Source: Trichosphaerium sp. ATCC 40318 (taxonomy: Eukaryota > Protista > Tubulinea). From it: a DNA stretch of 64,000 bases. This document shows, piece by piece, positions 19,009 through 21,368 of the stretch. Position 1 is the stretch's first letter. Every line of letters begins with the position of its first letter. Location of the stretch: the NCBI GenBank assembly GCA_038496445.1, contig JALMLS010000507.1:62001-126000 (forward strand). The letters are read 5' to 3'. Both the position numbers and the translations under genes were made by a program. The notes under the pieces are model-generated. The model had not been told where the DNA came from and made no database searches. It was given only the letters and a program-made list of their open reading frames with translations.

Positions 19009-20049
19009 GCTTGTTTTGTTGGTTATTTTCCGAAGAAAGAACGGCCCTAAATTGGTGTGCGGCGCGGATATTCTCTTCTACTTGGTAATGAGCCATGTAT
19101 TTTTATTAAATAATATTACAATAAGCATTCTGTTTTTAACAAGAACACAATACCTTTAGTCGTATTTTCTACCAATTGTTTTTTTCCAAAAAGAGATGAC
19201 TTGTCTACTATGCAAGCAAGCACCTTCCTTTTTGTTCAATAGAATTGTTAGTTATAGTTGTGTGTTTAGTGGTCTAAATTAGGACGCTAAAACCTAAAAT
19301 ACAAACATTATTACGAGATTATATTGTCATAAAAGTGTGAACACTTTTTGAAAGTACTTACGTATCCCAAGCAATATTGCTTGATGCTTATTAGAACCCA
19401 TACTGTTGACATATGCAATTGGGACCTATTGTTTTCGTAGCACAAGGTTAATTGTAGTTTTCAGTTATCCAGACAATCCCACTTTTAGTCACGCAGCTAT
19501 CGCATCGATATGCAGCTGGACAAAACATAGAATTTGGTGTGCCTCCGAAAACAATAAAGGAATTGTGAGAGTTGCTCACAGGGTTTTTGAGGTCTATGAT
19601 CACGTCTACATGTGTATTGAAGGTATTTAATATTTGGTGCTCTGGGCCAATTGTTGTCATTCCTAGGAATATTGGTTGGAAAAATAAACACTTGGGTTTA
19701 GCAAGATGGATAATTCTTGCGTCTGTGACTCCTGGGTACGCAATTGAGTGGCGCCATAAACGTGCTTTAATCTTTGTTCTTTTTATGTTCATTACCAAGT
19801 TGCAAACACCAGAAAGAAAACCAAGATGAATGTCAAACTTTAGTAAAAGTTGGCATGGTATACATTTTGTACTGAAAAGGAAATGAACATTGGATCGAAG
19901 TACAACGCCAAAAAAGGATAAACCTAAATTGAATTCCCACCTTTGTATGTGGGACGTTTAACCTACAACTTCTGTTGGCGAACTCAAGCCACGAATTCGT
20001 CCTTTAAGAACTACTAAGATTACTTAATTAAGTAAATCAAAAAAAAACG

Positions 20050-21368
20050 ATGACAGCATCTCTATTCGCTGTTGCGTTACTAATACTACTTACTATCGCC
20101 CATACCTTTCCATGTAATAACATTAAAGGACCAAAAGGGGAAGTCTACAGCTTGGCTCCTTTGCAATCAAAGGTTCAATCCTTTTTAGGTAGAATGGTGT
20201 CACGATTAGGAGACTGATAAGACCTCATTCACATTGAAGATCATTCACATAACGGATTACTCACATTCATGAGTTCATTCTCAACCTTCATGAATAGTTC
20301 ATGAATCATTCATGACCAAAAGGGAAAATTTACAGCTTGGCTCCTTTGCAATCAAAGGTTCAATCCTTTTTAGGTAGAATGGAATGTCCAACTTGCAAGG
20401 TAACGATTTAGACTTTTAATTATCTGAAAAACGCATAAGCTCCCACCTAAGCTTCTAAAAAGGAAGGTTTCTACGAGTACACAATGGATATATGCAATTC
20501 CACATATTCTTGCGGAAATTTCGAGCTATGTGGTGCATGCCAAATGAACAGAAATAATTCAATGCCACATTTCGTAAGTAATCATATGTGTTTTTTTGCT
20601 TTAATGTGCTTGTTCTCGCTTACATGTTGTAGAGATGTTATGGTGTCATGGACGAAGTTAGAGGCTTAGATAAAGAAACTGGTGTATTTTTACACTACAG
20701 GTCTCCTGATGGCGTACATTCGATGTCGTGTACGTTTCGTTGAATTGCAACTTTTTCTTTGGTGTGATTTTTCAACATACTTTTTCTTAACGTTGGCGTC
20801 AAGGGCTTATACGTCTCTCTGCTTAAACTTAAATTTCCAAATCTTAGTCTGACCTTTTTTGTATTAGTATCAATCTATTGTGACGAGTTTGGATCAGGTA
20901 CATGTTTCAAAGAACTGAAGAAAAAAATTAACTCGAGAAAATGTTGACGCTGTATTTGACAATCTTTCGTTTAGAGTGGAGCGATGTGGTAGTTTATGAC
21001 CAAGAATTATACTTGAACTATATTCCTGTTACTGCCAAGTAAAGTATGCATGCCCTATAAACAAAAAATGTACGAAAGGAAACAACACTTCTTGTAATTT
21101 TGAGATTTTAAAGAAGAATCTAAATTTCTCTTTAGACAAGGAATATGCTATCACTGAGGATGTTAAAGTTCTAGGTAAACTAGTTGGAGAAGGTCCTGCA
21201 AGATCAGTAGAAGAAGCAAGCAGGAGAGCGTCTGATAATGGAGCAGTAGCCTTCAATTATTATGATTACAGGAAACAAGCAGAGTACTTTAGGTTTGTTG
21301 ATGGACTTGAACGCCTCAGTACCAAATCGGAAACTTCAAGCGGTATTGTTTACAAGACTGGATTTTAA
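20050..21368 (+). CDS. Secreted protein with MRH/M6P-receptor-like domain and a possible PAN/apple-like C-terminal domain; exon 1 interrupted by an insertion
   Basis: Signal peptide MTASLFAVALLILLTIAHT, then C..GPKGEVYSLAPL, FYEYTMDIC..C..CGACQ, CYG, GVFLHY, SIYCD, VKYACP. Confidence 0.6.
20129..20382 (+). repeat. 69-bp direct duplication (20129-20197 and 20314-20382) flanking a 116-bp insert
   Basis: The copies are identical except 3 substitutions near their 5' ends. The insert (20198-20313) starts TGTCACGA and is rich in TCATTCA/TTCATGA. Confidence 0.95.

Follow-up and report, generated by a model that had tools for sequence, protein, structure and literature searches.

A truncated LTR-like element and a 69-bp exon duplication in a secreted-protein gene of Trichosphaerium: candidate proto-intron or young null allele

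In Trichosphaerium sp. ATCC 40318, a piece of DNA interrupts the first exon of a gene for a small secreted protein. Is it a newborn spliceosomal intron, or is it an insertion that disables the gene? The question is raised by a locus in the window, by which we mean the whole stretch of 64,000 nucleotides analysed here, where a first-pass annotation had suspected the birth of an intron through an insertion plus a 69-bp duplication that creates exact splice sites. The window consists of AT-rich eukaryotic DNA (G+C 35-39%) and forms part of contig C10 in an assembly of 70.3 Mb and 642 contigs; the published Trichosphaerium draft comprises 70.9 Mb in 710 scaffolds, with a G+C content of 37.7% (PMC10521059).

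The core of the locus is a direct repeat of 69 nt on the forward strand, with copy 1 at 20129-20197 and copy 2 at 20314-20382, whose copies agree at 66 of 69 positions (96%) and start 185 nt apart, a likeness far beyond chance. Between them lie 116 nt (20198-20313). This recovers the duplication that had been claimed, together with its three mismatches, which fall at repeat positions 12, 15 and 17 (20140, 20143 and 20145 in copy 1 versus 20325, 20328 and 20330 in copy 2) and are all transitions, copy 1 having G or C where copy 2 has A or T. If the insert is retained in the mRNA, the open reading frame that begins with the start ATG at 20050 (a small correction to the first-pass annotation) meets a premature TGA at 20215-20217 on the forward strand; the frame 20050-20217 ends, as had been reported, in ...FLGRMVSRLGD-stop, with VSRLGD and the stop standing in place of a conserved Cys-x-x-Cys-Lys.

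Copy 1 contains AG/GT at 20171-20174 and at 20187-20190 (the slash marks the splice point), and both sites recur in copy 2. They define two candidate introns on the forward strand, each beginning with GT, ending with AG and measuring exactly 185 nt, just as had been proposed: the first spans 20189-20373, with donor AG/GTAGAA and, at the end of a pyrimidine tract, acceptor tcctttttAG/GT, and the second, in an alternative register, spans 20173-20357, with donor AG/GTTCAA and acceptor gcaatcaaAG/GT. Because the two AG/GT sites lie in the duplicated exon piece, exact removal of 185 nt would restore the original mRNA. The reading frame is kept on such removal, as 139 nt (20050-20188) and 26 nt (20374-20399) add up to the 165 nt of 55 codons; at the junction, G and GT combine into a Gly codon, after which RMECPTCK follows, and the restored ...FLGRMECPTCK aligns with the ends of the first exons of the paralogs. 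The candidate intron is not purely duplicated exon sequence, since 116 of its 185 nt are foreign element DNA. We estimate from base composition that an AGGT occurs in a random 69-bp exon piece with odds of about one in five, and its presence alone is therefore not evidence of selection for splicing.

Comparison with the paralogs gives a gene model of seven exons, all of them on the forward strand, provided that the 185 nt are taken out. Exon 1a (20050-20188), an open reading frame that aligns to the first exon in the paralogs L033 and L028, encodes a signal peptide, the first cysteine and ...LQSKVQSFL and ends on the first base of a Gly codon, and exon 1b (20374-20399) is, according to the paralog alignment, the 26-nt rest of the ancestral exon 1 (..G RMECPTCK). 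Exon 3 (20463-20573; EGFYEY...PHF) is preceded by an intron at 20400-20462 that is common to the paralogs; exon 4 (20633-20729) and exon 5 (20868-20897; ..SIYCDEFGS.) were placed by comparison with paralog sequence, exon 6 (20975-21038) is taken from the gene model, and exon 7 (21136-21157) carries the tenth conserved cysteine in ..QGICYH, followed by TGA, where the paralog L028 ends in ...SQYACP. The coding sequence without the 185 nt amounts to 489 nt and 162 codons, which bears out the earlier statement that the frame remains open through the downstream exons. The window gene retains each of the ten paralog cysteines and every downstream splice site, and this fits a young event; in a very young event, the downstream exons would be intact whether the unit is spliced or not.

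Together with L028:1000-1815 (minus strand) and L033:1480-2230, the window gene (20050-21157) forms a family of small secreted proteins with ten conserved cysteines and the motifs C-x-N-I, Y-D/S-L, CPxCK, Y-x-Y-x-x-x-IC, CD and AC. Single exons matched no family in a Pfam scan and no relevant chain in a PDB search, which returned one weak chance match, and a guess that the protein contains an MRH (mannose-6-phosphate-receptor-homology) domain was dropped after a six-frame genome search in which Pfam CIMR and ATG27 had no hit at the locus. Exon 3, compared with 1.84 billion protein cluster representatives with no length limit, retrieved only a spurious repeat protein (P0001), and a 27-mer from exon 1b had no match when metagenomes were scanned with it. 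The unspliced ORF of 55 aa, looked up by exact sequence, is absent from the collection, but so are four other ORFs of the window, so that this result is of little information. That exon 3 retrieved no protein containing it would suit a null or leaky allele, though absence from protein collections may reflect low expression only.

The ancestral state of the exon can be read from three paralogous loci that were found exon by exon in the genome, namely L028 on contig C4, L032 on C70 and L033 on C80, the latter two being 96.6% identical. At the insertion point the paralog exons run uninterrupted (...LQSTVLTGLGRLRCNFCK and ...IQSKIVVGLGTMPCPNCK, each within one exon), their first exons are continuous (...YDLSKLQSTVLTGLGRLRCNFCK and ...YDLTVIQSKIVVGLGTMPCPNCK), and the intron that follows the first exon lies in the same place as 20400-20462 of the window; the window exon pieces 1a and 1b align to both ends of the paralog first exon. 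Given that all three paralogs are uninterrupted and the next intron is kept, the uninterrupted exon is ancestral and the interruption derived and specific to the window copy. An insertion-free state, for which the first-pass annotation had suggested searching the paralogs, is hence on hand, and the exon sequence restored by removal of the 185 nt matches it. The assembly holds no second allele or further copy of the window gene; as haplotigs were purged in the published assembly (PMC10521059), an empty allele could have been discarded. Because paralogs exist, the loss of this one gene copy may be tolerated.

The loci L032 (G000:C70:73377-76490) and L033 (G000:C80:57043-60156) are 96-97% identical over ~3 kb including non-coding DNA. 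They owe this likeness either to a recent segmental duplication or to being divergent haplotigs that remained in the assembly, in which case heterozygosity would be ~3%.

To judge by the signals that the interrupted exon presents to the spliceosome, the prospects of precise splicing appear mixed. The better donor, GTAGAA, carries a G at position +4, followed by A at +5 and +6, whereas the native donors read GTA followed by A or C in 15 of 15 cases, the set being hand-curated from the window gene and its paralogs; the alternative donor, GTTCAA, is also unlike this pattern. The acceptor at 20373 has eight pyrimidines in the ten bases before AG and a T at -3 (TAG), and tcctttttAG/G looks as good as the native acceptors. 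The AG/GTA of the donor offers five contiguous pairs to U1, which counts against reading the locus as a null allele. Five native introns carry a YTNAY-like motif 12-17 nt before AG, and the candidate intron has no clear YTNAY at that distance, its nearest TTTAC lying 41 nt upstream of AG. The native introns of the window gene measure 59-138 nt and the candidate 185 nt. In addition, several cryptic splice pairs that keep the frame would compete with the exact ones. Training of a splice-site model by mixture EM on GT sites, on ORF-bridging candidates with decoys, by one-per-cluster EM and under a strict long-ORF filter drifted to the T-rich background or became dominated by chance pairs.

On paper, the locus would be a splice-competent proto-intron. 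The reading that we favour, at a probability of roughly 55%, is that of a young, possibly heterozygous, null or leaky allele in which precise splicing is at most partial, and not of an established intron. Where the insert is retained, translation would stop after codon 55, and the unspliced mRNA would yield a truncated protein and be a target of nonsense-mediated decay. That the unit is instead a genuine newborn spliceosomal intron, efficiently removed at either AG/GT pair so that the normal secreted protein is kept, is possible, but we consider it doubtful. Such an intron would make sense of two exact AG/GT pairs 185 nt apart whose use restores the conserved paralog motif, of a strong polypyrimidine tract with a TAG acceptor, and of downstream exons, splice sites and ten cysteines that are all intact, even though this last point is uninformative if the event is very young. 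It would also suit a genome that is intron-rich with short introns (mean 75 bp, ~8 per gene; PMC10521059), and a duplicated AGGT alone has been found to give 6-16% splicing in human cells (PMC3265369). The same intron would, however, have to be recognised through a donor that at +4 to +6 is unlike all 15 family donors, with no clear YTNAY 12-17 nt before its AG, and in competition with the cryptic frame-keeping pairs.

The DNA that opened this probably null or leaky allele can be traced within the genome. The 116-nt insert matches at least nine other sites, the best two with 97% identity, and corresponds on the forward strand (20198-20313) to nt 1 to ~118 of a 171-nt LTR-like dispersed element, with 97-98% identity to the copies on contigs C363 and C16. 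The family counts ~12 full or partial copies in the genome, the numbers from this search being lower bounds. Alignment of the loci delimits the element as a discrete unit of 171 nt that starts with TGTCAC and ends with CTAACA, giving it TG..CA ends, and perfect 5-bp target duplications (AACTG, CCGGC, TTCTC and TTGCT) flank four of the six full copies. This combination of TG..CA ends and 5-bp duplication is the hallmark of LTRs. A terminal inverted repeat was sought in the element and none was found, and an Rfam search of 19900-21300 gave no match. Among the ~12 matches, again a lower bound, there were neither paired copies within one contig nor an internal gag-pol partner; because no paired copies were seen, the element should be called solo-LTR-like at most, and no stronger label applies. 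A piggyBac-like family with 5-bp duplications was considered and rejected, as its N-T-A/T-A-N target is incompatible with the duplications of the element.

The insert is thus a truncated copy of a mobile element and not anonymous DNA. The earlier proposal of an insertion plus duplication stands as far as the architecture is concerned; what changes is its reading, from a duplication alone to the capture of a transposon fragment with a long target duplication. The family also differs from introners: in place of many intron copies in unrelated genes, there are ~12 copies or fragments, of which the full copies carry 5-bp duplications and no consistent splice signals, and neither splice site comes from the element, the donor lying 9 nt before it and the acceptor 60 nt after it, in the duplicated exon.

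Several features of individual copies were observed along the way. The element holds three to four tandem 12-nt units (TTCATGAGATNN; window 20281-20313 and L002:1587-1626), and in the window copy the same G is lost from two units and the truncation falls at the matching point of the third, a pattern that suggests polymerase slippage or an unsampled source variant. When the empty site of an older copy with 85% identity and the target duplication TTGCT, L020:1357-1760 (G000:C5, ~590014), is reconstructed, an open frame of 79 codons surrounds the point of insertion, and a likely donor, AGG/GTAATC, follows ~11 nt downstream of the copy. Here a donor shift may have drawn a second insertion at an exon end into an intron. 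At L023:1479-1676 (G000:C199), a truncated copy (nt 53-171) is flanked by an imperfect 17-nt direct repeat (14/17), which may point to another truncated insertion that made a long duplication, or may be due to chance. The 3'-truncated copy L008:1476-1572 (G000:C5:511939-512028) comprises nt 1-75, and its upstream flank (ttttttacctaaaatg) is similar to the insertion site in the window (cctttttaggtagaatg), a likeness that could reflect target preference or coincidence. In L026:1612-1950 (G000:C18), finally, a 36-nt element fragment adjoins an array of at least five tandem copies of a 63-nt unit, which looks like a coding repeat.

The two junctions of the insert are unequal. On the left, the window copy opens at the exact first base of the element, directly after copy 1; on the right, the junction is internal to the element, at position 118-120, where GA (20314-20315) is common to the element and copy 2 and constitutes a 2-nt microhomology. 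The window copy lacks the 3' end of the element, and the target duplication on either side of it measures 69 bp versus the usual 5 bp. Compared with its closest relatives, it has no substitutions and two 1-nt deletions (20293/20294 and 20304/20305). Together with the three transitions of copy 2, these deletions are confined to a stretch of 38 nt around the right junction, while the remaining 95 nt of the element and 52 nt of the repeat show no difference, and such clustering has a P of ~0.006 for all five differences and of ~0.012 for the three substitutions alone. The first-pass annotation was right that all three differences between the copies are in the part of copy 2 that would be intronic; the relaxed constraint to which this might be ascribed is a poorer explanation than one cluster of mutations at a repair junction (P ~0.01).

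Since a precise left junction, a right junction with microhomology and a local mutation cluster are what one event would be expected to leave, the locus looks like a one-step aberrant integration or break repair and not like a simple tandem duplication. A foreign insert between direct repeats of the target, as break repair would leave it, is present, and the repeat is far longer than in published cases. Here we propose that a recent single mutational event in the ancestral first exon of this gene for a small secreted, ten-cysteine protein probably joined the first 116-118 nt of the 171-nt LTR-like element into the exon, along with a 69-bp target duplication. On the left, the true end of the element would have been joined precisely, and on the right, the insert would have been sealed inside the element by end joining at the 2-nt microhomology with error-prone fill-in. 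We infer either a half-completed integration or a chromosome break that was repaired via a captured fragment of element DNA or cDNA.

A history in two steps, in which a full 171-nt element first inserted with its 5-bp duplication and a later rearrangement deleted the 3' third and duplicated 64 more exon bases, seems improbable: the target ...GAATGG/AATGTCC is compatible with a 5-bp AATGG duplication at the left junction, but two rare events would have been needed at one spot, the mutation cluster and the right-junction microhomology fit one repair event, and the assembly contains no intermediate allele. More improbable still is an artefact of assembly or polishing, with the duplication or the three differences absent from the real DNA, for while short reads of an insertion-free allele could have mis-polished one copy in a draft built from Nanopore and PacBio reads with Canu, Pilon polishing and a Redundans haplotig purge (PMC10521059), and other loci paired at 96.6% identity suggest divergent haplotypes, the structure spans only 254 nt, well within single long reads, its foreign piece consists of an exact element end plus microhomology that an overlap error could not produce, and there is no overlap sequence able to mis-join both copies.

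The single event that we favour as the origin of a null or leaky allele resembles several known systems. Moore and Haber as well as Teng et al., both in 1996, reportedly described yeast retrotransposon cDNA fragments captured at chromosome breaks. As in the window, those fragments are said to extend from the exact LTR end and to be fixed by end joining with microhomology, whereas the window element is only LTR-like and had no internal gag-pol partner among the matches found. The neo-introns of Daphnia pulex that arise from staggered double-strand-break repair (PMC4202315; reviewed in PMC3443670) likewise have foreign DNA in an exon flanked by a direct repeat of adjacent exon sequence, but their exon/intron repeats are 4-12 bp long (PMC4202315), compared with 69 bp here; the Daphnia introns are polymorphic and identified as introns (PMC4202315), while the filler in the window can be identified as a mobile-element fragment. 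Introns made by duplication, according to the Rogers model and as exemplified by vertebrate ATP2A1 (Hellsten et al. 2011, PMC3265369), share with the window that both splice sites derive from a duplicated exonic AG/GT and that the coding sequence is restored exactly. They differ in being plain tandem duplications, whereas the window copies are split by 116 nt of transposon DNA, and in that splicing of the ATP2A1-type intron was measured, at 6-16% of transcripts (PMC3265369), whereas the window intron is a candidate. In introners and other transposon-derived introns of Micromonas, Aureococcus, fungi and dinoflagellates (PMC9860276, PMC11282704), the target duplication takes part in splice-site formation as it might in the window; introners are, however, specialised families with many intron copies that usually carry at least one splice signal (PMC9860276, PMC11282704), in contrast to a window family of ~12 copies with ordinary 5-bp duplications and to splice sites that both lie in the duplicated exon. 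An event of this kind, with transposon insertion or break repair and a target duplication that gives splice sites, is already known (PMC3443670, PMC4202315, PMC9860276, PMC11282704). Two points are unusual: at 69 bp the duplication is longer than the 4-12 bp seen in Daphnia, and it provides both splice sites, in two redundant registers.

Apart from Daphnia, a few fungi and the algae that bear introners, there are few cases in which the start of an intron can be clearly read and dated. We can only tentatively entertain, as an unlikely outcome, that an intron has been caught at birth in an amoebozoan, made in one repair event from an LTR-end fragment and a 69-bp duplication with two redundant AG/GT pairs, and spliced enough for a working gene; if this were true, a single event would unite three textbook routes to intron gain, namely transposon insertion, exon duplication and the repair of a break. 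Precise removal of the unit from RNA would make the locus a very young and fully readable case, in which the donor element, the junctions, the repair scars and the ancestral state are all visible, and it would mean that both splice sites can come from one long target duplication. Without splicing of the unit, the locus would be an ordinary insertional null allele. Either way, the present analysis documents a low-copy LTR-like element and an aberrant mode of its insertion in this genome.
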